Source of the DNA: Geosiphon pyriformis uo1
Taxonomy: Eukaryota > Fungi > Glomeromycota
Direction: 5' to 3'
Length of the DNA stretch: 64,000 bases
Assembly (NCBI GenBank): GCA_016748015.1
Contig: JAAOMT010000226.1
Coordinates: 726,604 to 790,603 of the forward strand
The notes beneath the pieces were generated by a model that was not told the origin of the DNA, ran no database searches, and saw nothing but the letters and a program-made list of their open reading frames with translations. Below are positions 13,341 through 44,414 of this stretch, piece by piece (the stretch's first letter is position 1; every line of letters starts with the position of its first letter). A program made the position numbers and the translations under genes.

Positions 13341-13766
13341 ATGTCTTTAAGTTTAAAAAAATTTTCATTGGCTTTTACTTTAATTCTCTTTATTATCATT
13401 TTGTCCCATGTCTCGGCGGCACCAATACCAACCAAAGAATTTTTACCCTATGATTTCGATTTGCCCATAGACCCAAACAATGTTGGTTTTGGAAATGAAG
13501 GCTATGGTAATGTCGGATACGGTAACATTGGGAACAATAATGTTGGGATTCTTAATAGTGGTAACGAGAATGTTGGCAATTATAATGGTCTATGGAGTGA
13601 AGGTATCGATAACGGCGACGCCAATATCGGAAACGAGAATGGTCAAGGAAATAAGGGTATTCACAACGGGAGTAAAAATATTGGAAGTAAAAACGGTTCT
13701 TTCAATGCTGGCTCCACAAATGGTAATAAAAATCTTGGGAACGGGAATGGGAGACTCAATGGTTGA
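13341..13766 (+). CDS. Secreted Asn/Gly-repeat protein, paralogue A (intronless, 141 aa)
   Basis: Signal peptide ending VSA-AP, followed by NxGxx and NxGxxNGxx repeats up to the C-terminus. Confidence 0.88.
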   Translation: MSLSLKKFSLAFTLILFIIILSHVSAAPIPTKEFLPYDFDLPIDPNNVGFGNEGYGNVGYGNIGNNNVGILNSGNENVGNYNGLWSEGIDNGDANIGNENGQGNKGIHNGSKNIGSKNGSFNAGSTNGNKNLGNGNGRLNG

Positions 13767-15459
13767 AATCGTTTCATGGATACAGTGCGCTTACACATAT
13801 GGGTAGAACTATATTGCATTTAAGAAACTTGATAGATGTTAAAAAGACTTTATGAAGTTTTCAATGCCGCAATCTTGGGAAACAATTAGTACAATATTTG
13901 AGATTATAAAAGTGTTTATTTTCCATTTTCAACTTTTAAAGATACAAGCTCTTTTGGAATGGATAGCTAGAATTTTTATTCATTTCTATTTATTTCTTTC
14001 ATATCTGGTGCATTGAAATTATGATCCTTGATTAGAAAAACATAATAATAGCTATGCAAGTTTTACGACCCTCTATTTTATGAATTTCATATGAGAGCAA
14101 AATAAATTTTGTATTAATAAAAACATAATTTTATTAAATTTAATCTTACGATTCCAAAGTATTGAGAATCACCATCAATTTCACATTGAAAACTATATAA
14201 TATTTGAGGGGCAACTTAAATTGTAATCTGACATGCTACCAAAATAAGGCTAAAGCATTAATTATTAAACATAAATTATTGACGTAATTACTAAATACTC
14301 TTTTCATGTTATAATATTGGTTTCCTTTAGTTTTGTGGCTTTGATGAGATACTTTACCATTCAATAATCCAATAAAACTTTAACGCTGCGTCCTAGTTTC
14401 TAATGAGAGCGTTAAATCAATAAAATAATATCCAAGTGACAGAAAAAGTGCTTTTGGTATTGTCAAAACTCATTCTAGTTTGAGTCAATAATGTTGTTAT
14501 TGAAAACTTTATTATTTTGTTTGAAACCTTGGATCTTTTAAAACGGTAATATTGGTCAAGAACTTTTTTTAATTCTTTGAAAACTTAAAATTTGAAGGGA
14601 AATTCCTAGTGGCGAAAATGTGTTGAATATTTCAATCGAGGTAAAAAAAAAGAAAATGAGCAATTTTAATTTCTGTGAATTTGTATAGAAAATATTTTAA
14701 AATTGTTTATAGCTATTCAGAATTTCTAAATACTTTCTAAATTTTCTTAAAAACATGAATGAGCTAGTTTTTAAAAATAACACTTCATTCAAAAATCTTT
14801 AATTCTCCTCTTTAAACTTCAGTTAAGATTTTAGAATTCAAAGTCCATTAGTTATTATTCTGACTTTGGACAAATTTCACTCTTAAAATTAAATTATGTT
14901 AAAAATTTGATTTATTTAAAATATCAAAAATATTAGTCTCGCAATATCATTGATCAGAAACAGTATTATCATAATTTGCTTAGTTTTCTTCTGGTAAACA
15001 TTTTAAATACCTGATAATTTGGAGCTGGAATACAGAACAGTATTGCTTTTTATTAATAAAACATTGGTTGACAATAGATCGATTACAAAATTAAAGCTCT
15101 CTGAAAAAGCAAAAAAGCCTTTTAGTATCAGTTATTAGAAAATTGTTTGAATTCTTTAATTTCTAAATCTTTCAAGAATAAATGTGATATTTTCTTCTAG
15201 CAAAAAATGTTCATGTCAAGAAGCTTGATCTTTTTTATATCTATGCAATATAAATCATTTCAAAAATACAAAAAATCTAAATTAAAGGATAGAAAATTTA
15301 TCAGAATAAAATTTCAAATTTGAATTTACTAAAACGAAGAATTTTTTCTAAAAGTTTAGTTAAAGTTTACAAACAAAAAAATGATAGAATTATGGATTGA
15401 AAAGTTTGTATTGTAAGAAAGAAAATATTTAAATCAACAGTTAAAACCATCGTCCTTTA

Positions 15460-16787
15460 TTAAATTATCGTCAATCCTAATACCACAATAGTCAAAATTG
15501 AAATGGCAGATCCGACTGAGTGAGCGATACCAATAGGTGCAGCAGCACTATGCTTTGTAGTAGTACTGTTTCCACTTTTATTGTCGTTATTATCAACAGT
15601 GCTATTCGTTCCGTTTTTGGATATTGGGCCGTAGGAAGGAGTGATGCTAATATCTTCAACAACATAGTTGGCAGAAGCTGGTTGATCTTTAGTTCCACAT
15701 CTATTTATAGAATAAAAAATTCAGTCTCAAGTGTTTTAAATATTCAATTTTAGCAAAAAATTTATTATGGCTCTTACTTTGAGAAATATGTGCTCGCGCA
15801 GGCTGTATTACATGCGCCTTTATCGACATTTGATACCTGAGGTATTATTATAAATGAAAGCCAATAAGAAACTGAAATGATCCGATATATTAATCAATGC
15901 ATAATAATTGAAATGATTTTAATACCCTATCACTTTGGCAAACAGCTTGACAAGCCTATAAAATTGAATGTTTTCAATGAGAGTTTCTTCAAAACCAAAA
16001 ATTTTAAGTCTCAAAAAATGGTTTTCATGAAGAATAATACTCACTTGACCTCTACCCGAACAATCTGCATAATTAATTGGCCATTCCTGTGCTTTTTGGT
16101 TAAAAAAATCCAGATAGTCAAAAACGAAGAATAATAAAAACCTGATTTTTCGAACTAAAAATATTTTTACCTTCAAAGTTGGGAATATGTTGAAGACAGC
16201 CACAGCCCCAACCTAATGTTGTGACGTTGCAAAAATTCTAAAAAGAAAATATGAAATTTTAGAATTGGGCTCAGTTCTAGCAAATGGAAAGTTGTCAAAA
16301 ATGAAATCATACTTACTCGGGGAGCCTATGAAAATTTAGTTCAAGATATTAAATTTCATTAGGTCAATATTATTATATTTTCATCGAGTTAGAAAAATCA
16401 AGATTTCGAGAGAGAAAAATTATCAGTTTTTACCTGTTTTTCATCACCACCACAAGTGGATGTACAATAGGCTTTATTAGCAGCGCAGAGAGCTTGACGC
16501 TCTGTGGTAGGCTTCATAGTAAGATTGTAAACAAAAGGAGGTATTTGATATGGTGGAGGTTCTGTCTGGCCTAAATAAAACAAGTGATGGAAATAAATTT
16601 TTATTCACGTTCAATTTTAAAATTGGAAAAGAGCCATGGGAAAGATTTCTGTCAGCGTTCATCAAAATATTAGCAGGTATAAGAATTCAAATATTTTCAA
16701 AATTCTAAAATTTCTAAGTATACCTTTGGCACTTTGGATCATAACACTAATGAGTGCCACCCAAGAAATAACAATGTATAACTTCAT
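15460..16787 (-). CDS. Secreted Cys-rich, probably GPI-anchored surface protein (DUF7707-like), about 8 exons
   Basis: Spliced reading: MKLYIVISWVALISVMIQSAK GQTEPP...ALCAANKAYCTSTCGGDEKQ APR NFCNVTTLGWGCGCLQHIPNF...PINYADCSGRGQACQAVC...GACNTACASTYFSKCG, then an N/S/T-rich stalk and a hydrophobic C-terminal tail (SAISILTIVVLGLTII*). Family name is from recall of the Cys spacing. Confidence 0.8.
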
Positions 16788-18207
16788 ATTAAGAAAAGTA
16801 AAAACTTTAAAAGAGGATTTGATTTTAGGAATTAAGGAAAAGTGAATACTTGGTAATGAAAATTTTACAAAGGAAAACCTGCCAAAGAATTGACGTCGGT
16901 TTTTGAAATTTTTTGATGAAATTAATGAATAGGTTAGAATTTGACTTGTTATGAGGTTGAAGGTAGGAGTGAGGAAAAAGCAATGATAATAAAATCCATC
17001 GGGATGAAATCTGTCTATAAAACTTGTAGTGAATCGATATTTGTTTTCCATTTCCAATCACAGAATTAGATGTTAAATTAGTGGCACAATGATATGTAAT
17101 CACTGAAACGAAGCTGCATTTGTGTTCAATAGAAATATAACCAATACTTTACAAGGCACATCTCCTATGTTGGCAATTTTGGAAATTCTCGGTGCTCTCT
17201 GTTAATCTTTTTGATACATGCATTAAGAATTTAATTCTTCCATTATCTTCTCGAACGTTATGTACGAATTATTCGAAGTCTGAACTATTTGCACAACACC
17301 CGAGATTTTTTTTTCAAAGATAAATATATCCTTTAATCAAATTCTTGCAACCATTTTATTTATTTGTATTTCTTCGTTAAAATCTGGTTCAAAAACTAAT
17401 AGTGGTCATGGGAAATTTTCGTTCAGATTAATCTAACAATAAAAAAAGGTGCTTTAAAAAAATAAAATTCAAGTATTACGTAAGTCTATTGATAGGAGGT
17501 TTCAATTATAAATGCGCAAAAATTTATTTGATCTTAACCAATAGAAACCTAAATTTCCTCATTTTACAAAATTTTTGCTCAATCCTAAATGCAAAAAATT
17601 AAAGTTTATTACAAATTCCAAAAAAACATAATTATATTTTTAATTTAAAGACTTTTATTTACTAAAACAAAAATGTCAAAAAGAAAATTTTTATAAATAG
17701 CAGTATACTGGTTTCATAAAAATTCTCAAGTTGGAATTAAATGTTTTATTCAATTTTGGACAGAGTATTACAATCTAATAACTATTTTTAACATTTAGCA
17801 CGTTATTTTTTTATGTTTTGTATCTTAATACAAGGTAAAGATTTTGATTTCTTAAAAATTTTCAAGACTAAATTTTTAATTTTCTTATAATAAAAGATAA
17901 ATATATGCTATGGCCTTAAAAAATAAGTGGTCTTATTTACACAAAATTATGTCCGAAAGTAAATTTAAACATCTTCAAAAAATTATTCATTTTCCTGGGT
18001 TTATGAAATGTACATTTTCTATTGATACTGGCATTTGTACACTCTTCACTTGCTATTTCCTTTTTAAAGGTTTGGACAAAGCCGACTTTGGCGACATTAG
18101 ACAAATTTCTTATTTGTGCAATTATATGGATTCTCTCATATTTTTCACTTGCAAGTTTGGTGCAATCATTATCCTGCAATTTAATGTGTTAGACATAATA
18201 ACTTAAA

Positions 18208-18382
18208 GGATTAAAAAAATTAAATAAAAGACTCTAGAAAATGCTTTCTTGGGTACATTACCATTCTGATTGCCAAGGATGAAGATTTGGGAGTCCAAGT
18301 TGTCATTCAAAATGAGGCATATACATTCAAGACTTGTAGTTGGTACGATAAAATAAAGATCATCGGAGGGCTCAAAGTTTGA
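18208..18382 (+). pseudogene. Fanzor/TnpB (IS607-like) relic, RuvC-II and zinc-finger region
   Basis: MLSWVHY, then after a frameshift LIAKDEDLGVQVVIQNEAYTFKTCSWYDKIKIIGGLKV*. This matches the TnpB/Fanzor E-x-YTSKTCS-x-CG motif with point changes. Confidence 0.75.
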
Positions 18383-18907
18383 TAGTGGGAAAATCTAAAT
18401 TAAAGCTACATAAAATTTTATCTTTTTTTGAAAATCTTGACTTTCAAGATTTTGATTGATCAATTAGTTGAAAGTAAAATTTGCTGCTATTTGATGTGGA
18501 AAGGGCTCTTGGATGAGCTTCATAGAAAGATTATAAAATCTTTCTTTACTACCGGAGTCTGAACAAAATGGAGGTGTGAGTCTTTTATTTTCTGAAATTG
18601 TGCCTTCTTTTACCATTGTGATTATGACGATAGCATTTTGGTTTTGATCCCATCATAGAAATCGAGATCAATAAAGCCATCAAGACAGAGGGAGTCACGC
18701 AGATTTTGAACTTTCGATATTAACAACCCCAATAAATCTTTATATAAGATTTTATATGCCATTCTTAAAAGTAAATTTGACTCATTTAAAAATTTAAAAA
18801 TATGCAGAAACCTAAAACGAATTTGCATGTTTAAACACTTTTAAAAATCAAGATATCAAAGGTTTGTCACTTTTTAACAAATAAACTTGACATTTGTTTA
18901 CTTTTTA

Positions 18908-20096
18908 CGACTCCCCAAAATTATAATATTGTTGTGTAAGAAAAATAATACCCACTTGTAGATAGTTAAACGAAATCGAAAGGGAAGATTCTGGCATACA
19001 TGGAAACGCTAAAATCTCAAAATGCTTGTACGTTATCCCACAAGAATATGGCGCTTGATTGAGAAGTATCAAAGAACAGGAAAACGTGAAACTTACCACA
19101 TTCTAAAGGAATAGAAATTCTTAGCAACCACGAAAAAGATTTACTAGTGTGTAAAGCCAGGGAAAACGACATGCACTACTCAATGAAATTGTCAACAATT
19201 TAGGTCTAAAAATGTAGTTTGTCAACTGCCGCAAATGTACTCTACAACTCTGGACTTTGCTCACGTATCGCAGCAAAAACCTTATATCTCAGAAACACCT
19301 GCCTACACTCGTGTTAAGTGGTGTGTAAGAAAAAAAAATAAAACCGTTCACGATTAGGCAAAAGTCATCTTCTCTGATGAGACGAGTATGGAATTGGGAA
19401 GCAATCACGACAACCAAGAGTTTGGCGGCATGCTAGCGAAGAGTTTAATACTAATTCCTTAGTCCTTACTCTAAATAGTAGGCGAAAATCCATAATGGTT
19501 TGGGGGTGTTTCACGGGAGGATTCAAACGACCATTGGTATTTTGTGATGAATACAAAAAAAATGTTGAAAAATAAATGCAAATAGTTACCTTGAAGTCTT
19601 AATAGCTACCTTGAAGTCTTAATAGCCATTATATAAAATAAAATTAAAAAGCTATATGAAAGTAAAAAATCATGACAACCAAATTTTCTTCCGTTTCAGA
19701 ATGTAATTAAGTTGTTAACTGGACGCTCCCCAATTTTTCAGCAAGATAACGTACTGATTCATACTGCAAAAAATATCTAACGGAAAATAAAATTACGACT
19801 ATCACTGGCCGGTGAATTCACCAGACCTGAATCCAATTGAAGCTGTTCAAGGACAATACCCAAAAACACGAAGTATGTGGTCGAACTTAAAATTGCGCTA
19901 AAGGAGGAAGAAATTCGATACCTCTGTTCTCGATGAAGTTATTCCCTCAATGCTAAGGAAAATTGAAGGAGGATTTTGAGGGCGGACAAAGCATTAAATC
20001 ATGTATAATTTTTATTTCGTAAAAAATTAAGTAAATCGGAAAGTATCAGAATTTTTGTGTCCAATTTTGAATCGGGCGTTACTTTTTGGGGTATTG
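18908..20096 (+). mobile_element. Degenerate Tc1-like transposon
   Basis: Frameshifted motifs VIFSDET, SIMVWGCF, IFQQDNVLIHTAK, WPVNSPDLNPIE. Imperfect termini (TA-CGACTCCCCAAAA ... TTTTTGGGGTATTG-TA). Confidence 0.85.
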
Positions 20097-20154
20097 TAAA
20101 ATATAGATATTCATAGGGCACATCGGCTATCGGAAAATCGTTCCACACAAATTA

Positions 20155-22598
20155 TTAAGATTCCCTTTTTAGTTTGCCTAAATAATGCCTAACATTTTCT
20201 TTTTTGGCAAATTTGGTGATCGCATATAATGCAGCTTGGGAAGTCTGAAAAATATTCATGACATTTTAGTCAAGAGAATTGAGACAATCAACTCCACAAA
20301 AACATACCACACCAATTGCTTCTTCGCTAACATTTTCCAGTGTATCACACGCCTGGTGGTAGCAAGGATCAAATGGGGCATTGGCAAATCCCCCAAACGT
20401 GTGCCTTTGGTCCTCAGTTTTTCGGCCCCCAGCTCCAGTCAATACCCCACCTAAAAGATCGATTTATAAATTGTATTGACCAAGTCAATCTCATTTCTTA
20501 GCAAATTGGGTATAAAAGAGCTCAAATGCTCGTAAATTACTAATAAAATGCATCATGCCTGATGGAATTCCATGTTCCAGGAATGGCAGAAAGTCACTGC
20601 CAGCTAACATATCAATCAGTTCATATGACTCGTGGGCAGCCTTGAAGTACTCTTCAAACACATTTTGTATTACTATCGAAGCATTTCGCACATCTGATGG
20701 CGCGTCTTCTCCCTTATGAATCTACAATATGTAACTTAAAAATTAGCAAAATATTACTTCATAAAAGTCAAAGCCAAAATCAGGGATCCTCATATACTCA
20801 CAAACGGGACGTAATTAGGACTTCCTAGCATATCAAAATTAAGATTCATAGCAATTTTTTCGTCCTCACCGCTCATCATGGCTTCTCTGATAAAATGTCG
20901 CGATCCTAAGAGTCCGATTTCTTCTGCGGCCCACCAAGCAAAAATTAAGTCATTTTTTGGCTTGAAATCAGCACGTTCGATGGCAAGCAAAATTTCTAAA
21001 AGAGTGGCCGATCCGGATGCGTTATCAACTAGACCTGCTCCAGCTGGTACAGAATCCAAGTGTGCGCCAAAAACAAGGGTATTTTCCTTTTCGGGACCAT
21101 CTCTTAGTAAGCAAATAACATTAAACGTGTCAGTCACAGTTATCTTTGTGTAAGTTTGAATGTCAACTTTTATTTCTTTTGAGAGAGCGAGCAGTTGTCC
21201 AAGTGAGTATGAGGCCGCAAGAACCGGTATTTTCATCAAAGGATCTGAAAGATATTAGCATATTTCATTAATGCATTGTTTTTAAAAAGTTCTAAATGAA
21301 ATAAATACCTCTTTCTTTCCAATCAACCAGTCGAACCCGGTTGTATAACAGCGTTCTCCGTGCTGGGGAATTATAAAAAATTACAGCAGATGCTCCTTTC
21401 TTTGAGGTTGTGAAGCAAGACGCAGATAATACGTTAATTATAGCAACCCATAAAGCAAAGACAATTAACTTGCTATACCTGTTCAGCCTTGTAAGCTGCC
21501 TTCCAAAAGTCACATTTGCCTCCTTCTTGAATCAATGCAATCTTATCTTTTACTTTGTCCCAACCATTTTCATTGCATCCAGATTCTGGTATAATCACTA
21601 CCTGCTGTTTTGAAAGTGTTGCTGACTCCCCTCCATATCTCATACCTTAATCCAGAAAAAGTATCCATTAAATAAATTTGGCATATTTAAACAAGAATTA
21701 AAAAAGCTTCTTTTTAATAACCTACTCCAGAAATCCACTCCGCCTTGATAAGTAACCGTCCCCTTTTTATGACGGTCATCATCATCATCATCATTATCCG
21801 GAAGAAAGGTGACATTTAATTCGGCTTCTTTTATTTTTTCCCAAATAGGGACTTTGAAATACTGTAATTTAACTTCACATCGTGTATTCTTCTTCAAAAG
21901 AGAGATAATGTATAGGGCAGACGCGTTATACCCAGCAGTAATGGAACGTGATGGTCTCTTAGTGGTATAGGCATAATTTTCTTCTTCATCGAATATCTCG
22001 GTAGATGCTTCGGAGATTGATGGGTTTGATTTCATTGATTTATTAAAAAATTTGATAATTTTTGATGAGTATAAAGGAATGGATGAGGTTGGAATTGTAT
22101 CGTTCTCGTAATATTGAGCAATTTTTTCAAACGCTTTCAAGTGTGCAAATATGTTCCGAGTAAGTTGTTGTGGCAGAATTATTTCTTTTTCATGCTTGCC
22201 TTCAGCTGTGAACAATTGAAAATTTTTTGAATCTCAGATAAATTGCATATTAATGTTGAAAATTCATTTTAAAACATTTTTCATTCATGACTCACGTCGA
22301 TTATGTGGCAAAAACAGAATAATACAAGTAATTGAAACTATAAAAACTAACAAGGCAACAAGACCATATGGTGCAGCTTTTACAGCTACCTCACGAGGGT
22401 TGTGTCGGTTACTTCTGTTATTTCGACGTGAAAGGAGGGGTGTTGGCGATGATTTCCGTGAGTTTTCTTCATCTACAGGATAATATTTAATTAATTTGGA
22501 GAAATTAAAGGATCAATTTAAATGCACTGTCAGATTTCACCTATAATATTGCTGCTGTTACTTCCCAGAAGTGGGGCGTTTTCCAACAAAGTAGACAT
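20155..22598 (-). CDS. M28 family aminopeptidase with PA domain (aminopeptidase Y-like) and an N-terminal membrane anchor, multi-exon
   Basis: FGAHLDSVPAGAGLVDNASGS, WWAAEEIGLLGS, NLNFDMLGSPN, GSDFLPF, PCYHQACDT. PA-type KGASAVIFYN. N-terminal hydrophobic segment LVALLVFIVSITCIILFL. Confidence 0.9.
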
Positions 22599-25350: not shown

Positions 25351-26217
25351 TTATATGTAACTCCAAGTGATTGAGATACGACCTTTTGATGGGTCTGCAA
25401 GTTGGTTGAACACAACTGGCGCCATATCAACGTCTCCACTCTTGCATTCTGGGCATCGATCTTGGATAGTAGCAGTTGCGGATTTACCCTCATGATAAAT
25501 TCTGATTTGTTTGCCACACAGACTGTTTTTATTGGGGTTTCCATTTGGGGTAGATGGATCAAAGTCAGGTGCAGCCATGGCAACCACTGCATCATTATCG
25601 CCGTCAGTTTGACCACACGCACCAAGGCCTGGGTTATAGTAAGTACCTTCGCCTGATCTTGAACCACTACCGCCAGTTGATGAAGCCACTGGTTCTTTGG
25701 TTGGCTGTGGAGCTTCAGTTGTGGTTGGTGCTGGAGCTTTAGTTGATGAATGTGTGACAGTGGGCTCGGGAGTGGGCTCAGCAGTTGGCTCAGCAGTTGG
25801 TTGTGGAGCTTCTTGAGTTATCGTTTCGGTTTCAACAGGAGTTTCAGCAGGAACAGTCTCAACAGGAGCTTCATTAGGAACGTCTTCAGCAGGGATTTCA
25901 ACAGGTTTTGATGCTTTTGGATGACGATTCTTGGAACGATTTTTGGAATGATTATTCGGGAAAGTTGATGTTAGAGGAAAATCAAATGCTGGGAGGACCT
26001 CAGTATCTGAGAAATTAGGAATATTCAGTTGATGGCCCTTATGTTTCACTAGCTTCAAAGAACTTTTGCAATTTTTCTTGCCACCAGGACATTTTTTCGA
26101 ACTTTTGGTCGATTTTTTGGCCCTCTTTCTTTTAGGTACTGGGCTGGCAATAATGGACTCGACTATGAGAATAAGAATCGTGAATAGGAGGATGACTTTA
26201 CCGAGAGTGAACTTCAT
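25351..26217 (-). CDS. Secreted RlpA-like double-psi beta-barrel (expansin/loosenin-like) protein
   Basis: Signal peptide, basic segment, P/T/E-rich linker, and C-terminal GEGTYYNPGLGACG...NPNKNSLCGKQI...IQDRCPECKSGDVDMAPVVFNQLADPSKGRISITW. Confidence 0.92.
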   Translation of the reverse strand: MKFTLGKVILLFTILILIVESIIASPVPKRKRAKKSTKSSKKCPGGKKNCKSSLKLVKHKGHQLNIPNFSDTEVLPAFDFPLTSTFPNNHSKNRSKNRHPKASKPVEIPAEDVPNEAPVETVPAETPVETETITQEAPQPTAEPTAEPTPEPTVTHSSTKAPAPTTTEAPQPTKEPVASSTGGSGSRSGEGTYYNPGLGACGQTDGDNDAVVAMAAPDFDPSTPNGNPNKNSLCGKQIRIYHEGKSATATIQDRCPECKSGDVDMAPVVFNQLADPSKGRISITWSYI

Positions 26218-31228: not shown

Positions 31229-31243
31229 ATGATTATGATGATG
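31198..31243 (+). repeat. (GAT)n microsatellite
   Basis: Read directly from the sequence. Confidence 0.9.
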
Positions 31244-32775
31244 AAATGAACATACATTGCATATAGGTCTCATCTCTTTTCATCCCCCCTAAAGAATCCA
31301 AAAATATGTGAGCATCAACGCCATTAGCTAAATGGAACATCATCCGCGTTTACCTTACAGATTTCTTTTAAAAGTTGTTGGCGTGCGCAATTCTGATAAT
31401 CATAAAGCACTACTTATGACTTCCAGCTTGCAGTTTTGATCCAATTGAAAGCCTCAAAGGTTTCATGTTAATTTAAATGACTTTAGAGCCTTGAATGTTC
31501 TTTATTCTAAGGAGAATTGATTGTATAATGAAAACTTATTTAACCAAAGTAAATTGACATCAGTTAATGATTTCAGAACTGTAAGAAGTTGTTCACAGTC
31601 TTTTTATATTCAGTTCACATACCATATTGGCTCCAAATTTCATCCAGAAATCCAGATATAGTTATATGATCTAGTGAATTCTTTTAGAATATTCTAAAAA
31701 GTTGAAAATTTTTTTTTTCTTATAAAAAGTTGAAAGAACAAACGTTATAAATTTTTACAATGTAGATCGTGGCTAAATAATGTACAAACTTCGAAAAGCA
31801 GGAACATGAAACTTATATGATACCAAAAAAAAAACAAATTAATATTGCCAAATATGAAAAGACAATAAGTTTTTTTTTTTAAAAAAAAAGTTTGTCATTT
31901 TAGTTGCTTATTGCGGAATTGTGAGCTCTTTCAAAAAATCAGAACAAAATATATTTTAATGACCTAGTTTAAACCTATAAATTTTGTAAAAATTTGCTTT
32001 AATAATAAAAGAACAAGTAAACATTTTATCATTGAAAATTATAATATACAAAATTTTCAAAAAAAAATTCATCTAATAAAATCATTATAATATATAAAAA
32101 AATGTTTCAATGAAAAATTAAAATGATTAATCAACAAAACAATTTGAATTACATTTATTAAGTGGGATTTTTATTATTAATAACATCTCTAATTAATATA
32201 TATAATTTCATATTATTCAAATCTATTATTATAGCTAAAAAGTTTGGGAATAAGTATTTTAAATGTATAATTCCAATTAAAATTTTCGCTCCAAATATTC
32301 CTAACCCTTATTATTCAACCAAATTTTCGATCATGGAAGAAAATATTTATTTGATAGATACTAAAAATATTTTACATAATTTGAATAATTTATCGCTTAA
32401 ATAATAGTTTGCTTTCTTTAATCCTAATGCAATTTTAACAAAATAATAATATGTTAAATGTTTGAAAGCGAAAAATTTAAACGAATTTAAATTCAGATTG
32501 GCAAGAAGGTTTTAAATTAACAAGTTAACAGCGGATAACCTTTTAATTTTTCTAATCTCAATCGAAATTAATTAATTAGTTTTAGATTTAGATTTATTTT
32601 ATTTCCAAAACTGAGATAAAATTAAATAGGTTTGTTTTGTAAGATGCGTCTTTGAAAAATATGCTCATGTCTATTTTTTAAATTCTATGTTAAAATAATT
32701 GAAAATAAATAAAAACTAGTAAAGTAGCAGAGTTATAAAAAAAAATATTGTTCATCTCTGATTCAAAAGTTTTGT

Positions 32776-33441
32776 TTAATAATAAACCTTGGGGTTATGA
32801 TTGCCATTACCATTACCATTGAAATCACCATTATTATGATTACCATTGATTGAGCCTAATATTATTGTTTAAAGAGTAAGAATTATTCAACGAGCAAATA
32901 TTTTGGATAAAATTACAAATAAAACTTACCATGCCAATCACCAATATTACCATTTCCATTATTACTACCATTAGCAATACCATAATTGTATGATCCATTA
33001 TAGGAACCATTATTGCTTCCAATATTATTGTTACCGTTATTTGAACCACTTGCCGGGTCTGAACTTCCTATTCCATTATAAGAGCCATTATTGCTTCCAA
33101 TATTATGGTTGCCATTGTTTGTACCCGAGTTACTGACACCGTTGTTACTTCCTATATTTTGATTTCCTCCATTGCCATTACCGATATTACCTTTACCAGT
33201 GTTACCACCTTTAATGTGAATCAACAACAAAATATTTAAATACAGGTTTTCTATTGATACCAAATTAAGTATTTATCTAAAAATCTAACTTACATCCGAT
33301 ATCATTAAAGGTTACAGTGCATTGGCTAATATCGTAACCAGATAAATTTTTTTTTGTTTGAACAGGTGCTGCTGAAACATTTAGCAAAGCAGTAAGAGAA
33401 ATGAGAGTGATGAAGAAAAGAGTAAAATTTTTTAATGACAT
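32776..33441 (-). CDS. Secreted Asn/Gly-repeat protein, paralogue B (3 exons: 33441-33294, 33208-32930, 32855-32776)
   Basis: MSLKNFTLFFITLISLTALLNVSA-APVQTKKNLSGYDISQCTVTFNDIGC-GNTGKGNIGNGNGGNQNIGSNNG...SSDPASGSNNG...GNHNPKVYY*. Canonical GTAAG/AG introns keep the frame. Confidence 0.88.
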
Positions 33442-36440
33442 TTTTCCTGAATTTTGTGGTTAGGGTTTATTTGATTAATTCTTTGAGAAAATGAAATAAA
33501 TTAAAATAAAATAAACTTTTTTAAGCTAGGAAAGGTAGAATTGAAAGCGTATTTAAAGATTAAAAGACAAGTTTCTTGGTTAAATTGGGGGGTGGGGGGT
33601 GGGGGGAAGGGAGGGGTTTTTTGATGAAGGTTTTCCCTCGCATTTTTAAAAGAATTTTTTTTTTGTGGCTTAAGCTTACCGTTATTGTGAATTGAAAATT
33701 TTCAAAAAATGATACACATGATCTAATTTAAGAAACTGATGGTGGATTTTCAATAATTTTATAATTTAATCTTATACATAGATTATAATTAGCTTTCTTA
33801 TTCACAGATTTTGGTCTTGAAAGTCTAAATTCCATTTTTTCATTAATTAATTAAATGCATAAAAATTTTAAGGCTAGACAGTAAATCCAAAGAAAGATAT
33901 AATTAAAATTTATACAAAGAATTTCAAAATGAAAATTCACAAAAAGTGTTTACGCTTACATTGTTCATTAATTAATTTAAACTTCAACTTAAAATTACAA
34001 TTTTTTCTCTTTTAAAATATCATGCTTTTCGTTAAAATAGGAAGAAAGAATAGGTGGTGAGTATTACACTTTGGGTTAATGGATAAAATAATTATTCCAT
34101 AATAATAGTATATATTGTGTATCAGGCTACGTCCAATAAAAATAGAAAAAGATATTTTAATTTTAATCTATGAAAAAATTTCTTGACAATGAAATGAAAA
34201 TCTATTCTTAAAAAGTTATCATACGAGAAACTTTTTTCTATGATGAATTCTTTATTGAAAGTAATAGATTTTTTTTTAGAAAAAAAAAAACTCAGATTCA
34301 ACTCAATTAGATAATCTTTCGATTGGATTGGGTATCAGTATAGAAAAAAAATGGGTAGATAAAAAAAAAGGAATAAATAATAGGTTGGATGGAATTGAGG
34401 GAGTAAACAAAAATATGCATCAGGCTTTTTTGAAGGAAGAAGGTCGGTAACATAGTAAATTTTGGTAATAGTGTTGCCGCAATAACTTTCCCCCATAAAT
34501 GTATTATTGTAACATATAATTGCTAAAATTAGTTTTCAAAACAAATTTTTTTTAGATAGTCCAATTACCCATTGAAAATTAAAAATAAAATAAAATAAAA
34601 TATTGAAATAAAGATTATTAAATAAATCTTATATATTAGTTTAAAAATAAAACAGATTAAGGAGGAATCATTTCAGGTATACCTTAGATTATCTTTAATA
34701 TATTCCAAATTTTCCCAAGATCAAACTTTATTTCTTAATTTAAAGTGAAATTAAATAAATGAAATGAAATGCGTGAGGAAACAATATGAAATACAATCTT
34801 TTATTTTTAATTCAATGATTTCGGAATTTTTAATTCAAAATTAATCCCAAACAATTAATCTACATATCGAAAATGTGATCATATAAATATTAAATTCTCT
34901 AAAGGCATTTAGTTAGAAATTGAGCGCGGTATAACAAACATAATCTAAATCTATTTTTCATTTTAATTTAACATGTACAAAAAAAGAGCATCCATAAGAA
35001 AGCATCAAATCCCTGACTCTATACGCGGTCCCATAAGTCTTTAAGCTTTAACAGAAGACTGGGAGAATCTTTCACAAAACACAATCAACGAAACTAGAAA
35101 AATTTTTTTAAATTTAATTAAAAAAATTCAATCTTATTTCATTGATGAGAACTTCAAAAGAATCTTAAAGGCTGAGACATTTGGGCAGGTTATTCCGAGT
35201 TTTAATGTTTAATTCTCATTTTTAGATGGCTTTCTTTGATTTCACCGCTTTTAGTGATTGATTGATTGATTGATTGATATTCATAGAAAGATTCCTTTGA
35301 TCTTTTCGAAAATATCTTAAAATGCGTGCCAATGATAAACTTTTCCATCGAAAATTGTGAAAGCATACATATATTAAAAATAATTTTTTTTTTCTTTTAA
35401 AGGAAACCCGTAATCAAAAAAAATTTGACCGAAAAAATACCTCGAAACGTGAAACGGCTGATGCCCGCCGTTAAATAAGGCTAAAATTTACCAACATTTC
35501 ACATGGTATGTTCAAAGAGAATTGCAAAATAAATAATAGATTGTTCAACTCCGTCGCTATTCAAATACATGGAAATTATTATTATTATTATTATTAAAAG
35601 TTTCAGTTAAAAAAACATCATATAATAAATTCTATTGATCCCTTTATTCAGATTAATTTGGTTTTTTTATATAAAAATTACATCATCATTTTATAAAATT
35701 TGCTTGTTTATTTGTTTGTTTTTGTTTTCTTCCTATTTTCTATGATACGTATTGATATCTTGATCTCTTAAAAAAAGGTTTTTATTGTATTGTATTATAT
35801 TGTAAAAAAGTAGACGCATTGGAAATCATTCAATCTTCTTTTCTCACGCCAAAACTGGTATATTTATTGGATATCTTTGAAATTGCCTCAATTTAAATAC
35901 ATGTAATTAGTTAATAATAATAACAACTTATAAAAATGTCCTTTTTTAAAATTCTTTCAAAAAAAGGTAAAAAAATTTTATTACTAACAAAATTTATATC
36001 GTAACCTTCTAGTTTTTTAGTAATCGTTCCTTTTTTGAAGAATCAGGTTTTTCCTCCAGTTAAAAAAAGGGTCTAACATTGTAAGATTAGATTACTTCTT
36101 TAATTCAGTTAGTCCTTTTAAAAACGCTGTCGTAAAACTTAACAAAATATTGAATTTCAAGTGAAATGACGAAAAATTATTTTTGGTAAAATCGTGTTAA
36201 AAAAAATGGATCTCACCAATTATGATGAAGACGAAGGGAAAAATTTTGTAGGCAAACTAAAGAAAACAATATCTTTGGTTCTATTGATAGATATTATTCT
36301 TTCAAGGTATGTGTCTATAATAGTTATAAAAAATATACTTATAAAAGAAGTCTTATCTTTTAAAATTCCCAACAATCTCACCATAACTCAAGTTTTCTGA
36401 TTTCTTTCTTAAAAAAAACCGAAATCAGTTTTCTCAAAAA

Positions 36441-37011
36441 ATGGCACCAAAATCATTTTTCGCTTTCTTTATCTCCATCGCTCTGTTTGCATTGACCTCG
36501 ATATCGGCTGCACCAGTTCCAACTGGCTTGAGTAATTGTCATACTGAAGTGGGTGATGTTGGTTGGTAAGTAGTGTGGAAAAATTTTAAAATTTATAATC
36601 CCGAGTAAAATTCAATTTTTAAATTTTGATTCATTTCTAATATTAAATATCAACAACATCAACATCAACAGTGGTAATACTGGACAATCGAACGTAGGAA
36701 ACAACAACGGTGGAAATAATAATGTCGGTGACTATAATGGATATGCAAACACTGGAGTCGATAATGGTAGCAACAATGTTGGTAGCTATAATGGTTCATG
36801 GAATAGTGGTTCAAGTAATGGAAACAATAATATTGGATACTGGAATGGTTCATTAAACGGTGGTAGTGGTAATGGAAACAACAATAGAGGCAATTTTAAT
36901 GGTAAGCTTGTTATAGTTCCCCTTATTTATCTCTTTGAAATTATTCTTACTAAATATTTTTTCTATATTCCTATTTTCCCCAACCCTATAGGAGTAGGGA
37001 ACGGAAATTAA
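36441..37011 (+). CDS. Secreted Asn/Gly-repeat protein, paralogue C (3 exons: 36441-36565, 36672-36901, 36992-37011)
   Basis: MAPKSFFAFFISIALFALTSISA-APVPTGLSNCHTEVGDVGC-GNTGQSNVGNNNGGNNNVGDYNG...GNFNGVGNGN*. Not in the ORF track on this strand because it is spliced. Confidence 0.88.
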
Positions 37012-38335
37012 TAAATGAGTCTCAAAAATTCATAAGACCAGTTTCCCCCTGATAAAATTAGCATAGACGATCTTCTAACATTGTTTTGCAAACTTTTTTT
37101 TTTCTTCTTTCGATTCTTGACTTTGTGTAACATTTATTTTGAAACCCTTTTTAAAAATTTCCTTAATCCGAAACTGGATTAAATAAAAAAAATCTTTTAA
37201 CAACGATTTTCTCTTGCAAGTTATATCATTTCCAAAAAAAAATTCTCTTTTTGAAAATTGACCCACCCTTTTACTTATTGTTGTATACAAACAAAACAAA
37301 ACAAAACAAAACAAAAAACAAAACTTTAATAAAAAATTTGTGAAACCAGTTTTGACTCTTTGAAAATTTTAAATTTTTTATTGGGACAAATGTTTTGTTT
37401 CTAAACGTAAAAAGCACCTTTACAATTCAAAATATCTCTGATAAATTTGTCGAACGTAGATATTTTATTTCATGATTCTCTACTTCAATTATGAAAGCAC
37501 ACGGAATCTTATTCTCACAAAATAGAGTTTACCAATCACTTGCATAAATATCAAAGATAGTTTCTAAGTTTTCAAAGGAAACCTGAATTTTTTGTAATTT
37601 ATCAAGTTTTTCTTTTCTATCAACTTGAAAATTCCACAGAGTTCAAATTGATAAAAAGATTTTTAGATTTTCAGAAGAAAAGTGTGTAAAATCGATCTTG
37701 AAAAATAATGATTATCTCATAGCCCATCCAGGAACCTGTTGGATGAGAGGCTGATTTTTTAATCAACCAACCAACTTTCTTTTTCATTTTACGTGGCAAA
37801 GTCTGGACTCTTATTTCCAAGATTTCGATGAACAGAAGGAATATACTAATGGCTTAGAGTTAGAACCTCAATCAGAATTTTTTGCACTTTGAAAGAAGTT
37901 GACCAACATTTAGGATTCCAGAGTTCAAAAATCGGCAATAAAAGGTCATAAGAATAGGTGAAATATTTATAAAAAATAAAAATAAAAATAAAAAAAAGAA
38001 AAAGAAAAAGAAAATAAAAATAAAGAGAAACGAATTTCACGTTCAAAACTTTATCCAATTTTTTTTTTCAACAAATGAAATTCACAAAGCTACATAACGG
38101 TCATGAAAAATTAATTAACCTTCTAATAAACTAACCAATTATGACAATCCTACCAACAGTGCCTTATCCTAAAGTGAAATTCTCGCTTCTTTTTTAAAGG
38201 CTTAGTTTGACACAGGTAAGAGATTATACAATAATTTTTCTATAAAAACAAGGCCTCTCGAGTTTTTCCAAGGACACTCAAGCAATTTGTTTATATTCAT
38301 TTGCATTCCATATTTTTTAAACTCGCAACAAAAAA

Positions 38336-38653
38336 ATGTCACGAACCATTTTCACATTTTTCCTTCTTGCTTTCATTGCTCTTGCCGCTTTTTCTTCGGT
38401 CTCTGCGGCTCCATATTTAGTTAAACGTACTTGTTCAGCGGACGCGAACAGTATTGGCTGTGGTAATACCGGTAAAGGCAACATCGGGAATAATAATGCA
38501 GGAAACAATAATATCGGCTTAAATAATGGTTTTGGGAGCACCGGATTCAATAACGGAAATACCAATATTGGCAATAACAATGGTAGGTATAACGCTGGGG
38601 ATAACAATGGAAACAAAAATCTTGGTAACAACAATGGATCCTTTAATGGTTGA
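38336..38653 (+). CDS. Secreted Asn/Gly-repeat protein, paralogue D (intronless, 105 aa)
   Basis: Signal peptide VSA-AP, KR site, TCSADANSIGCGNTG cap, repeats to the C-terminus. Confidence 0.9.
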   Translation: MSRTIFTFFLLAFIALAAFSSVSAAPYLVKRTCSADANSIGCGNTGKGNIGNNNAGNNNIGLNNGFGSTGFNNGNTNIGNNNGRYNAGDNNGNKNLGNNNGSFNG

Positions 38654-40127
38654 AAGGTAAAAGTTTAATAAACCTTTTTCCAAAGAATAATTGGCATCTT
38701 CCGTCTCATGATTAATAACTTACTAATATTATCTAATGAATGTTACATTAAAATATTTTTATTCAAAGAATTAGCCCTAGTTGTTGAATTTTTTCCTTTA
38801 TAAATAAGTAAGATTAATTTAAAGATTATAGCTGATTTAAATTTTCCACGTGTGAATATCCTTTTTACTTCTTTCCCAACATAAGAAATTATTCATATTT
38901 AAAATGAAGATAGTTTTTGAATGATCAACTAAAACATGTAAATAAATTCTCTTTGGTAAATGGTAAAAAAAAAAATAAAGTTTGGAATTTCCCCCATCCT
39001 GAATTGCGTTTAAATCATGTATATCATTCAAAATTTATGCTAACCCAAAAACTAAGATATTTAAGGATATTCTATATAAGGAGAGAAAATTTTTTTTTCA
39101 TAAAATCTAGTAAAAATTATTATAAATTTGACTTCAATAGGTAGGCATTGTACTTTGTAAAATATAAAACCTGAGATAGGAATATATTCTCATATATAGT
39201 TTTCTTTAGGATACTTTTTTAATGAGCCTAGAAAACAGTACATTTTATCGATTAGAACTAAAATTAATATCGATTAGAAGTAAAATTAAAATTGACATTG
39301 ACAAATATTTGAATTTGTACGCATCAAAAATTTAGAAATTTCCCGTTTTTTAGGATAGCTGATAAAAGATTTTAATTAGATAAGGGATTAATAATAACAT
39401 TAAGTATTTTTATTTAATAGCTTATTCAGCTCTGTGGGTATTAGTGATTTAGATTTTTTTTGTTCTTTTATTAGTGCATTAATCATGTTCCAGCTTAATT
39501 TTTTTTCTTTTTTGATAGTGTAAATTTATTTAATAAAGGAGATAATTTTTTTCATAAAAGCCTCTCAAAACGAATCTACCAAAAAGTTTTTTTATTGCTA
39601 ATATTAGAAAGTCTATTTCAGATAGAACATAAAAAGTTGAATATTTTTTTGTAAATAATAAGCAATATTTATTAACTTTGCTCATTTAGAAAACAAATAC
39701 ATTAATTGATTCTATTAAGTAGTGAAGTGTGTTTGTTTGTCTTAGCAAAGGATTATGATCTAAAAATATAAATAAAGATTATGGCATTAAAAAAAGGTTG
39801 AGATTATTTGGATGTTAAAACTGTCCAAGCTTGATTTCATTTTTGGAAAAGTTACCAATCTATCTAACTGACACTTACAAACTATGAAGATTTAGTTCTC
39901 AGAACAGTTATAAAATTCTTGTTATTTGTAATCTAATAAAACATACAAGATTTAAGCAAAAAAATTAATATTTGCATTGATAAAATAATTCTCCAAATCT
40001 CTCTAGACGAAGTTTTTGAAAGCGTAAGGTTAGCATTGCATTATTTTGAAGACAAAATAAAGATTGCTAAAATATTAAAAATTTTATTAAAGCTTTATGG
40101 GTGCAAATATTTTCTTATTATTATATA

Positions 40128-41160
40128 CAGGGGGGTATAAAAAGTATTGGACACTTAATATAATATATAAAAAAGGCTATATATAGTAATACCATTATCA
40201 ATTTAAGCCATAATTTTTTTTATAATTACTTATAGTTATAATCTACAAATCAACATAAATCGCGTCCTTGTAAAACACAACAGTGGATCATACGCGTATA
40301 TATAAAATATCAAACATTCTTGTTGTGAAAAAATTTACCGCATCAAATGTGTCTTGGAAAAGAACTTTCTGAATACCAAAAAAGAGGGATTATTTCAGCA
40401 ATAAAGTTAGGACATACAAACAGTGAGATTTCCACGACTATTGGATGTTCACGTTCTTCTGTAATACGTGTATGGAAGTCATACGAACTAAAAAAACTTC
40501 CTAAAAAACGAACGGGCCGACCACAAATTCTTGACAAACGCGCACGTGAACAACTCAAATATTCAATAATGGAGAATAAAGAAACCCGCTGCCAAACTCT
40601 TTCTCAAATACGATTGAATTTTATTAAAGATACCAACAAATCTATTTCTATACAAACTATTCGAATTGGTTTAGCTCAAGAAGGACTTCGCTCGTGCATT
40701 CCTCGTCTCAAGCCATTAATTTCCAAATCAAATAAAGAAAAACATTTACAATGGGCTTGTACTTATGAAAATTGGACAGTAGAANNNNNNNNNNNNNNNN
40801 NNNNCTTACCTCTTCAAATGTTGAATTACTTCCTTGGCCAGCACAAAGTCCTGATATTACTCCAATAGAAAATCTTTGATCATATATTGAAGTTAAAATT
40901 CGTCAATGTAATTCACAACCCTCAAATATTGTACAATTGGAATGGTGGGTTAAGGAAGAATGGGATGCGATACCTGTAAATTACTATCGTAATTTGATCA
41001 AGTCTATGCCATGTCGAGTTCAAGCTATTCTTGAAGCAAATGGGGGTCAAACAAAATACTAACATGTATTTTAATATAATAATAAAAAATTAACGAATTA
41101 TAAGTTAGTTCTTTTATATAACATATTATAAAAGTGTCCAATACTTTTTATACCCCCCTG
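40128..41160 (+). mobile_element. Tc1-like DNA transposon with perfect TIRs (contains an assembly gap)
   Basis: 29-bp perfect TIRs CAGGGGGGTATAAAAAGTATTGGACACTT with TA flanks. Transposase from 40347 (GKELSEYQKRGII...RTGRPQIL...KPLISKSNKEKHLQWA); after the gap, WPAQSPDITPIENL*...EANGGQTKY*. Confidence 0.95.
40785..40804. other. Assembly gap (20 N)
   Basis: N run replacing the central DD part of the Tc1 transposase; true length is probably several hundred bp. Confidence 0.99.
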
Positions 41161-41926
41161 TACATATTGGTTTCTTGCCTGATTATTTCATTTGGAAATA
41201 CTTAGATCACACTGGTATTATTTATGAAATGTTTGTGCCTTTTAAAGGATTATAAGTGTTTTTAAAGTTTTGAGATCACAATTTTCAATGGGTCAAGGTA
41301 ATGTGATTCTCCTGTGTTGGTGTGTATCAAAATTTCTCCTTTTTAAGGTATACTTGCATATTGTTTTATTTGTTTTGTGGAAATTCTGGTTTCATTTCTT
41401 GTATATTGACAGAAATTTTTTTATTTTGTACACATGGAATATAAAAAATGCTCAAGTGATTTGGAAGTTTTTATAAAGAAAACTGTTTTTAATGTTATTT
41501 ATTGGTGATAGTGCAAACTTTTTACAATGCAAAAAATATTTACGCCAAAAAAAGCTGCAGTGATATTTGAAGTGATTTAATACAAAAACTTTAAAAGGAG
41601 AAAGTTCAAAATAGCAATAATTTTTGTAGTTTAGGGAAAATATTATGGGAATTGGTAACAGCAAGAAAATTCATCGAATCCTCTCAAAATTGTTTAATTT
41701 AAAAGTATCTTTATTGATCAGTTTTTTTATTTAATTGATATTAAAAACTTTTATGTAAGCCAGAACTCTCTTTGACTACCAAGTCACTGAAATTATATTC
41801 TCCTGCTTGAGGTAAGAAGCCAAAAAAGGGTAACCAAAATTTATTAATTTCTTAACATTAAAATCAATCAATTCGCTTGAATAAAAATTATAAGAAAAAT
41901 CTCTTCAATATATTAAATTTTAGGCT

Positions 41927-42475
41927 TCATTCCTCTTTTACACCTTCAGCTTTTATCTTTTCAGTACTTTTCTCCGGAGCTTTCTCCATGCGACGAAGCA
42001 AGGTTAACCATCTACCCCTGCATCCTTGTCGATTCCTAGAAGGGAAATACTGGTTGGCAATCTCAGCCCAATTTACGTCTTTTGCAATGGCGTGAAATAG
42101 GATTTTATCTTCTTCTAACGTCCAAGGTGTAGCCTTTGATCGTTCTTTTATAATTTCTAATCCCTTTTTGGGTGATTGATTCTTAGGCTTTCCAATCAGT
42201 TTGCGTGTTTTTTCTTTGGCTAGTCTTTTACGCTTTTTTGTTGGTGACTTTTCAGGCTGATTAAAAAATTATTAATATTTGGAACAGCAAAGGGAACCCT
42301 CAACTTATTTAATATAAAATATTTTTACCTTGTTTACCCAACTATCTGTTTCGTTGCACTTTTCTATCTTAACCTTGCTGGGTGCAGCCTCGTCTGAGCC
42401 ATAGTTTTCAAATTCCTCTTGACTTTCTGCTTTCTCTTCGACTTCAATATTTCGTCCCTCATCGTTGTATGGCAT
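41927..42475 (-). CDS. Small single-repeat Myb/SANT protein, paralogue 1 (2 exons: 42475-42329, 42256-41927)
   Basis: Acidic N-terminus, KKRKR NLS-like segment, TPWTLEEDKILFHAIAKDVNWAEIANQYFPSRNRQGCRGRWLTL. Missed by the ORF track. Confidence 0.85.
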
Positions 42476-43731
42476 TAGATTTCTACGACAATTCCGTAAT
42501 GCTGAAAAAGATATTAGACAGAAAAAATAATTTTTCTAATAATTTTCCTTTTTAATTTTAGTACTAAAGTAGGGTAATTATTTAAACCAAAAACAAAATA
42601 TACTTCCTAATTAAACTTTTTATTTAGCTGACTTTCTTTTAATCGCTCATATCAATCTCTTTGAATAATATTCTGATATTTTGTTGTTTTAGCACTCGAA
42701 ATTATTTTAAAATGGCACTTTTTTATTAAGCAAAATTTTTCTTCGCCATGTTTGATCTATATTTTATAACAGTGAATCCCACTGCGTTAATATTTTGATA
42801 AATTTTATTCTGAAATCAATCAGCCCACGAGATTTTTACATGGGCAACTGTTGATTGCTTTAAAACCTTTAACAAATTAACTCTTTTTTTCTATTTTATC
42901 ACTCTAAGATAAGTTTTAAAAATAATTAGACGAAATTTAGGGGTATGAGATGATAGTTTGTTCATTGAAAATCCCAACCTAAAGTTAAAAGAAACTTTTA
43001 ATTTAACACAACAACAAAATTTTAATTCTTTGTTGTCAATATTTCTTCTTAATAAACCATCTGGTAAAATACAGCCTATTTCGCTGCCTTAATTAAGGAC
43101 TGTAGGAAATTTTTTAACGGCGGTCTTGTTCAGAATTTTAGAAAAGTTCATTATTTCGCTGTTGCTTAGAAAAAAAAATGCGTCCTGATTAGTATACAGT
43201 TAGGCGAAATTCAAATATCAATTATCGATTTTAGAAAAGCTGATTATTTTGTAGAATAATCGTTTTACTAATTATATTTGAGGTCACAATGGACAAGTCT
43301 AGATTTGGTAACAAAAGCCACCCAATTTAATTTCTTGTATTTTCTTCATCGCCACAAAAATTTAGTGGGTAAAATTCTTGATTTGGGCTTGGCGTTAATT
43401 ACTTTTAAAATCATTTTATGGTTAGCACTGCCACAAATTTGGTATTAGAAATGGAGATGGCTATGAAGATTATGGTAGGATTCAATGACGAGCTTTAATA
43501 CAAGATTGGATAAAGCCTGATCATTCAATAAGGATTCTTTGTAAATAACATAAAAGGCATTGTCATAGGTAAGCCTCAATATACATAGCAAAAGTTTCTT
43601 TTAAAAGTGGTATGAGTGAAGCCGTCTTTTCTACTTTTTTTCTATTAACAAACTATTCAAAAATCATAATTCTCTTTCAATTCATCAAGAATTTCCAACA
43701 TTATTCAAAACTTTGATTCATTTTTACAGAA

Positions 43732-44414
43732 ATGGCCTCAAAATTTTTTTCCTTTGCTTTAATAGCTTCAATGATGTTTGCATTATTAGCTATCGTCTCG
43801 GCAGCACCACTTCCTATTAACAAACGGGGCGAAAAAATCTTTGGAAAATATGATCCCAGTGAATGTCACACAGAGGTTGGCAATGTTGGCTGGTAAATAC
43901 AATTTGACGTAGCATCAGCAGTTTTTATACTCATCTTTTCAACTCACTTCTCATATTTTTCTTTCTCCTAATTAGCGGTAACACAGGAACATGGAACGTC
44001 GGCAATGGCAACGGTGGTAGCAGCAATGTAGGCAGTGATAACGGAGCTGGAAACTCGGGTACTAATAATGGAAACCATAATATCGGTAGTGGAAATGGAT
44101 CTTGGAATGGTGTTGGCAGCAAAGATCCAGCCAGTGGATCAAATAACGGAAATTACAATATTGGAAGCTATAACGGTTCATGGAACGGTTCCAACAATGG
44201 TGGGGTTGCAAATGGTAGCAACAATGGTAATTGGAATTTTGGTAGCTGGAACGGTATGTCAAATAAATTCTAATTATTTACATAAGTGATAGCTAACCAT
44301 ATTCAACAAACTCACTAAATTCTATTTTTCTAATCTTTTTTTTTTCTTATACTATTTATTGCCTCTTATTTCACAGGGTCACTCAATGGTAACAACAACA
44401 GGCCCAAGCCTTAA
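43732..44414 (+). CDS. Secreted Asn/Gly-repeat protein, paralogue E (3 exons: 43732-43892, 43976-44253, 44377-44414)
   Basis: MASKFFSFALIASMMFALLAIVSA-APLPINKR-GEKIFGKYDPSECHTEVGNVGC-GNTGTWNVGNGNGG...SKDPASGSNNG...GSWNGSLNGNNNRPKP*. Confidence 0.88.

Follow-up and report, generated by a model that had tools for sequence, protein, structure and literature searches.

We analysed a window of 64,000 nucleotides from the Geosiphon pyriformis uo1 genome (contig JAAOMT010000226.1, positions 726,604 to 790,603 of the forward strand; GC content 28.6%) that carries five paralogous genes, here called A to E, for small Asn/Gly-repeat proteins of 105–168 amino acids with predicted signal peptides. Open reading frames (ORFs) and exon translations bore out an earlier reading of the same DNA (the original prediction), which had placed five paralogues at 13341, 33441 (reverse strand), 36441, 38336 and 43732 and had described three of them as spliced (Table 1).

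Gene models and repeat architecture

Genes B, C and E each have three predicted exons and two introns. All six introns are canonical GT..AG introns of 74–123 nucleotides (nt), and the summed exon lengths (507 nt in B, 375 nt in C and 477 nt in E) are multiples of three, with the frame continuing into the repeats. These splice models were drawn from the sequence and from conservation in Ambispora gerdemannii (see below), and each exon of the three genes was translated, searched, aligned and analysed on its own, not as part of a joined full-length protein. Intron 1 splits the codon of the second Cys in all three genes, after base 1 in B and one base later, after base 2, in C and E. Genes A and D stop at a TGA right after NG, at the point where other members carry a GTAAG donor.

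Table 1 Genes A to E, with exon boundaries as in the splice models, and neighbouring features; positions are those of the window
Feature	Position	Strand	Description
Gene A	13341-13766	+	One ORF, 141 amino acids; predicted VSA-AP signal peptide; no Cys pair; long pentapeptide head, 18-residue body
Gene A end		+	C-terminal NG directly before TGA stop (ORF translation)
Gene B exon 1	33294-33441	-	Predicted VSA-AP signal peptide, first Cys, base 1 of second Cys codon; donor GTAAGT
Gene B exon 2	32930-33208	-	Repeat domain, 26-residue period, DPASG loop
Gene B exon 3	32776-32855	-	Short C-terminal tail starting SINGN, and stop codon
Gene C exon 1	36441-36565	+	Predicted ISA-AP signal peptide, first Cys, two bases of second Cys codon
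Gene C exon 2	36672-36901	+	Repeat domain, 18-residue period
Gene C exon 3	36992-37011	+	Five codons and stop codon
Gene D	38336-38653	+	One ORF, 105 amino acids; predicted signal peptide, KR site, Cys-x8-Cys loop
Gene E exon 1	43732-43892	+	Predicted VSA-AP signal peptide, KR site, first Cys, two bases of second Cys codon
Gene E exon 2	43976-44253	+	Repeat domain, 26-residue period, DPASG loop
Gene E exon 3	44377-44414	+	Short tail and stop codon
DDE_1 (pogo-like) endonuclease fragment	8647-9432	-	Transposon remnant
ORF between A and B	25351-26217	-	288 amino acids; C-terminal DPBB_1 (E 1.4e-6, right at cut-off)
Decayed Tc1/Tc3-type transposase	40347-41063	+	Not a family member; HTH_Tnp_Tc3_2 (E 2.7e-12) in the piece before the gap
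Assembly gap (N run)	40785-40804		Within the Tc1/Tc3-type transposase remnant
In-frame TGA	40877-40879		In the transposase piece 3' of the gap

Each product opens with a hydrophobic N terminus that ends in VSAAP (A, B, D and E) or ISAAP (C), a predicted signal peptide that AlphaFold modelled in D as a helix over residues 2–20; a shared (V/I)SA-AP ending, as originally described, was found in all five. A Lys-Arg (KR) site follows the predicted cleavage point by 5–8 residues in D, E, several paralogues outside the window and the Ambispora orthologue. In B to E the repeats are preceded by a Cys-x(8-9)-Cys loop, the second Cys standing immediately before GN[TK]G, and gene A is without Cys. After the loop come at least four NxGxx pentapeptides and then NxGxxNGxx units. 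This order, together with the recurring I/V/L and W/Y/F positions, agrees with the earlier description in all five proteins; when 12 paralogues are aligned, 21 columns hold an N or G that never varies.

The repeat unit itself had to be revised. In A, C and D, residue identity is highest at lags of 9 and 18, whereas hydrophobic or aromatic residues recur at lag 18 (0.43–0.55) and hardly ever at lag 9; for B and E the peak lies at lag 26 (0.43–0.56). Units with I/V/L and an aromatic residue alternate with 'small' units, which a DPASG-type loop extends in B and E. In exon 2 of gene C, for example, N[VI]Gx[YW]NGx[aromatic] units alternate with N[TSG]GxxNGxN units, while gene D has four pentapeptides and five nonapeptides with an 18-residue period. 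Because of this alternation the nonapeptide is half of the real repeat, and the nine-residue period of the original prediction gives way to one of 18 residues (A, C and D) or 26 residues (B and E). In the pieces examined, Asn makes up 20–36% and Gly 17–28% of residues (Asn plus Gly 38–62%), and Pro is rare.

Family, constraint and place among GN-rich proteins

A profile search of the genome gave a family of about 12 members, five in the window and the others on six other contigs, including a divergent pair and one decayed copy. In paralogue L002 (G000:C392:137117-137521, reverse strand), the Trp codon of the last GSWNG unit has changed from TGG to TGA directly before the conserved intron donor, and this paralogue is a truncated copy or a pseudogene.

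Synonymous sites are saturated between the paralogues of the window (proportion of synonymous differences, pS, 0.74–0.9, versus 0.15–0.31 for the nonsynonymous proportion, pN). The orthologue of gene B in Ambispora gerdemannii, P0005, aligns with exon 2 over 76 codons with no gap and with 71% identity, at a synonymous divergence (dS) of 1.03 and a nonsynonymous divergence (dN) of 0.21 (dN/dS ~0.2), and it shares with gene B the position of intron 2, the donor context and the start of exon 3. Constraint across genera and the retained intron 2 support real, constrained genes and the splice model. Selection on the protein, which had been proposed because the register is kept while the DNA has diverged, is thus supported as purifying, with dN/dS not near 1. 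At the Ambispora locus (L021:4001-4654, GCA_910591945.1), the annotated 217-amino-acid product reads through the equivalent of gene B's intron 2; an apparent one-base indel relative to gene B shortly before the conserved donor may be an assembly error or mark a decaying copy.

Secreted proteins rich in Gly and Asn (GN-rich) have been reported from Ambispora leptoticha, Paraglomus brasilianum and Geosiphon (Schultz et al. 2022, PMC8786786), where they were classed as intrinsically disordered proteins (IDPs), possibly amyloid-prone and unique to Glomeromycotina (PMC8786786). Among them are GpRIC1-3 of Geosiphon pyriformis, of 456–470 amino acids with KR sites (PMC8786786; Hoffrichter 2018 thesis as cited there), whose transcripts reportedly accounted for 22%, 5% and 3% of the reads obtained from an expression library of Geosiphon (PMC8786786 supplement). 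The published members contain 12–39% Asn, about 20–33% Gly and 0–6% Pro (PMC8786786) and are built on a 13-residue NGxxNGxxNxGxx unit, as in Amlep_AGL4 (PMC8786786). Genes A to E share with this group the signal peptide for the endoplasmic reticulum (ER), in some cases a nearby KR site, the high Asn and Gly and low Pro content, the NxGxx and NGxx building blocks and the fungal subphylum. They differ from GpRIC in their smaller size, in the 18- or 26-residue period in place of the 13-residue unit, and in the Cys pair (all except A), which has not been reported for GpRIC.

The 13-residue pattern is abundant in the Geosiphon genome (657 matches, versus 5 for a control pattern). Among the N/G-rich reading frames of the window there were no runs of 13-residue units, and only the five genes turned up; the family profile (alignment A1), run on its own genome, recovered no 13-residue genes. 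A nine-residue DNA pattern was tried as a family marker and discarded as unspecific, because NNG reads as NxG too and the pattern also matches the 13-residue family. On these sequence features we file A to E as a distinct branch of the loosely defined Glomeromycotina GN-rich (RIC, or 'GN-rich IDP') group. The statement in the original prediction that no characterised fungal family of this kind is known needs qualifying, since the GN-rich/GpRIC group has been described, albeit as uncharacterised proteins (PMC8786786). The Cys-capped 18/26-residue branch and its bacterial kinship (below) appear to be new, the wider kind being already in the literature.

Predicted fold

From its single sequence, AlphaFold modelled gene D as disordered outside the signal peptide, with a mean predicted local distance difference test (pLDDT) score of 52. 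With a 12-row alignment of paralogues, the best model of D reached pLDDT 72.8 and placed beta bridges at the 'x' residues of NxG, at positions 40, 50, 60, 69-71, 78, 87-89 and 96, that is, every 9–10 residues. In this model the bridge pattern fits two parallel sheets, with one turn of 18–20 residues per period. The structural neighbours of the model are all solenoids, namely the RTX roll of CyaA (Z 3.9) and other beta-helices (Z 2–3.5), joined in the Atlas by pectate-lyase-like and NosD helices (template modelling score, TM, 0.42–0.49). Foldseek against the PDB returned nothing, and neither did a sequence profile against PDB chains. The beta-solenoid of the original prediction was thus returned by AlphaFold once paralogues were supplied, albeit with moderate confidence and weak structural matches.

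The closest structural analogy is to the RTX beta-roll (CyaA block V, Serratia LipA), in which nonapeptides form 18-residue turns, two per turn, with one hydrophobic core residue per unit. The RTX consensus GGxGxDxUx carries a calcium-binding Asp, whereas the repeats of A to E have Asn at this position and almost no Asp. Folding of A to E would then not depend on calcium. No Pfam match to HemolysinCabind (PF00353) was found, and there is no sequence relation to RTX. The N-terminal disulfide loop, if anything, speaks against open-ended self-stacking.

Disorder is one alternative to this model: A to E could be disordered GN-rich proteins that cover the surface of hyphae or bladders as a hydrated gel, or as a coat that phase-separates or is conditionally amyloid. 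Several observations point that way and weigh against a folded module, among them the published assignment of the Paraglomus, Ambispora and Geosiphon GN-rich proteins to IDPs with predicted amyloid propensity (PMC8786786), the disordered single-sequence model, the high share of Asn plus Gly and the pLDDT of only 48–63 for the other four of the five alignment-based models, which were built on a shallow alignment of paralogues only. To these can be added the absence of any structural match above Z 3.9, and the N-glycosylation sequons that NGS[WYF] creates (one to four per protein), which could hinder tight stacking. Against disorder stands the strict register that N, G, I/V/L and the aromatic residues keep. 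The hydrophobic period of 18 or 26 residues, the conserved Cys pair and the constraint between genera also argue for a folded repeat over disorder; low-complexity regions that are disordered can usually gain or lose residues and slip out of register, whereas gene B and its Ambispora orthologue align with no gap and at low dN/dS. We consider disorder unlikely on balance, though a serious competitor.

The amyloid, ice-binding, adhesin and effector roles put forward in the original prediction are at most candidate roles. The repeats contain no Thr ladder such as the Thr array of the ice-binding beta-solenoids TmAFP and MpAFP, to which structural matches reached only Z 2.2–2.9. A curli-type reading was rejected, there being no Curlin_rpt match in the fungal or bacterial proteins and no curli-type secretion genes among the bacterial neighbours.

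Alphaproteobacterial relatives and proposed origin

In a word-indexed protein search gene D had no match, and the Ambispora protein matched itself only; an exhaustive search with the fungal profile gave 332 matches. Pure NxGxx proteins of Pentapeptide_2 type account for many of these, including most of the top 150, and in many cases align to the head only. The full-length collinear matches are small secreted proteins with a pentapeptide head and an alternating 18-residue body. We confirmed 94 alphaproteobacterial loci, mostly in Mesorhizobium and other Hyphomicrobiales, all annotated as 'hypothetical protein'. Neither set of proteins, fungal or bacterial, has an NCBIfam family, and the bacterial set has no Pfam family of its own either. 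Judged by sequence, these alphaproteobacterial secreted proteins, which the original prediction had missed, are the closest relatives of A to E outside fungi. Proteins of this kind in Mesorhizobium, Methylobacterium and Amaricoccus share with A to E a signal peptide, the arrangement of head and 18-residue body, and a similar size (115–180 amino acids); theirs is a bacterial Sec signal peptide, and they are without Cys pair, KR site or introns.

The many pure NxGxx matches raise the question of whether A to E are divergent members of Pentapeptide_2 (PF01469), the PPE-MPTR type, with a quadrilateral helix of five residues per side throughout. That family consists of tandem NxGxx or NxGxGNxG units with a beta-helical fold that is predicted, not solved (PMC5263243, PMC4858275). 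Gene A scored 19.3 bits (E 0.0011), below the Pfam gathering cut-off of 26.4 bits, whereas D and the exon-2 pieces of B, C and E had no match; of the bacterial relatives, the metagenomic P0001 reached 26.7 bits and several Mesorhizobium proteins carry a precomputed PF01469 assignment. Pfam found no PPE domain in any gene piece, the N terminus being a predicted eukaryotic signal peptide. The body is built of 5+4 units with an 18/26-residue period, and the 12 top-scoring pairwise partners include no pure Pentapeptide_2 protein. The likeness to PPE-MPTR proteins noted in the original prediction thus holds for the pentapeptide head and fails for the body, and we regard membership of Pentapeptide_2 as rather improbable.

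Two further proteins resemble the family in part. P0010 (run SRR5271165; 273 amino acids) has a eukaryote-like signal peptide, a pentapeptide head and an 18-residue body, and is among the best partners of A, C and D. P0009 (L105), from the green alga Auxenochlorella protothecoides (GCA_003709365.1), scores 35.4 bits with Pentapeptide_2, above threshold; its Cys-flanked NxGxx runs open with 'CTADANGNIG', resembling the 'CSADANSIGC' of the gene D loop.

In the bacteria, at least two N/G-rich ORFs were present at 66 of 80 loci, in clusters of two or three that typically combine one 13-residue and one 18-residue type. In L023:3152-4788, L039:3335-4537 and L048:3344-5357 (Mesorhizobium, Taklimakanibacter and Amaricoccus, respectively), a 13-residue gene is followed by an 18-residue gene and then by a variable third. 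Both repeat types of the bacterial clusters coexist in the fungal genome too; the window has the 18/26-residue type only, so the bacterial pairing with a 13-residue gene is not matched there. The clusters lie next to a LuxR-type two-component system in Mesorhizobium, and next to a phage-type integrase and an RTX protein in Amaricoccus. The only conserved neighbourhood was the two-component system, in some of the loci, the other neighbours being integrase and metabolic genes.

Large bacterial surface proteins whose ends are PEP-CTERM-like or RTX-like also contain the NxGxx/18-residue module. This suggests that the module is structural and argues against reading A to E as Kex2-trimmed defence or signalling peptides (Gly-rich antimicrobials, or effectors toward the cyanobacterial partner). 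The KR sites close behind the predicted cleavage point in D, E and several paralogues, the small size with a single disulfide, and the abundance of the related RIC transcripts (PMC8786786 supplement) would suit such peptides. A to E have no amphipathic or cationic character, however. We give this explanation only a slim chance.

Collinear identity to a bacterial protein rises to 64% (82% positives) between gene D and ORF2 of Amaricoccus solimangrovi, across 66 residues and with no gap. The composition-adjusted E-value of this alignment is 4e-22 (72 bits), and shifted registers of the same pair score 30 and 25 bits. Features that are irregular within the repeats are common to the fungal and bacterial proteins: a GSTG unit, a GDNNGNKN segment and the order of head, then 18-residue body. 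When sequences were shuffled with every N and G held fixed, fungal–bacterial pairs kept z-scores of 3–6.5, equal to those of fungal paralogue pairs. A profile built from bacterial proteins alone recovered A (E 9.5e-20), C (E 1.4e-16) and five other members in the fungal genome; an additional match of this profile, at C456, was rejected as an unrelated Ser/Asn/Val repeat protein. The best-scoring partner of A, C and D is the Amaricoccus protein, above their own fungal paralogues. In the tree, the fungal proteins form one clade with Amaricoccus and P0001 and the Mesorhizobium type stands separately, each of the two splits with 100/100 support, though the branching does not settle fungal monophyly.

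Low-complexity repeats can converge and inflate E-values. The likeness could therefore reflect convergence on an Asn/Gly solenoid, with no gene transfer. The N/G skeleton accounts for most of the alignment score, shuffled means reaching 80–85% of the observed scores. The bacterial subtype nearest to the fungal proteins is rare, with a single hit at E 1e-6 among 301 sampled Alphaproteobacteria, and the 13-residue branch shows little similarity beyond the skeleton (z 0.2–4.0 in the N/G-fixed shuffle). Convergence accounts poorly, in turn, for a collinear score of 72 bits that drops to 30 bits in a shifted register, for the shared irregular segments and head–body order, for profiles that detect in both directions and for the greater closeness of A, C and D to a bacterial protein than to their paralogues. 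Convergence thus seems improbable to us, though far from negligible, and shared ancestry through an old bacterium-to-fungus transfer is suggested as quite likely by the sequence comparisons.

Taken together, sequence and model make it reasonably probable that A to E are small secreted beta-roll or solenoid modules of the wall or interface, a distinct branch of the GN-rich group whose ancestry is shared with Alphaproteobacteria by transfer. On the other side, A, D and four paralogues, looked up exactly, have no entry in a public protein collection. Each protein would consist of an ER signal peptide, a short pro-segment (with a Kex2-type KR end in D and E), a disulfide loop (not in A), pentapeptides and an 18/26-residue body. 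The body would fold into a parallel beta-roll or beta-solenoid of flattened shape, each turn corresponding to one repeat period. In this fold the I/V/L residues of NxG would point into the core, Asn ladders would run at the Gly turns and aromatic residues would line one face, and the disulfide loop may cap the N-terminal end. Such a protein would probably serve as a rigid extracellular wall, matrix or interface module, its flat Asn/aromatic face turned toward a periodic partner, for example a polysaccharide. An old transfer from a bacterium would have been followed by the gain of a eukaryotic signal peptide, KR site, Cys pair and introns, and then by duplication.

Whatever their origin, introns, fungal base composition and flanking eukaryotic transposons mark the five genes as clearly fungal now. 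One of these transposon remnants, of Tc1/Tc3 type, lies between D and E and contains the assembly gap, 2.1 kb past gene D and 2.9 kb ahead of gene E, so continuity across the gap is irrelevant to the five genes. The ORF between A and B ends in a domain (DPBB_1) that corresponds to the double-psi beta-barrel of expansin or RlpA type, and may encode a secreted wall-active protein.

The cluster supplies small, single-exon, disulfide-capped members suited to structural work, gene D having 74 residues after KR, and offers a testable link to a family that is just as unstudied but widespread among rhizobia and related bacteria, organisms readily open to genetics. Should the transfer be true, the account of how the mycorrhizal lineage's signature secreted family arose would change. 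More tentatively, and with somewhat less than an even chance in our estimate, an Asn-ladder beta-roll module may have passed from an alphaproteobacterium to the ancestor of Archaeosporales or of Glomeromycotina and radiated there into the GN-rich/RIC proteins as folded proteins. In that case, bacteria would be the source of a family described as unique to Glomeromycotina, and this family would be folded, would include the most abundant reported symbiosis transcripts of Geosiphon, and would represent a calcium-independent counterpart of the RTX roll that has no solved representative.

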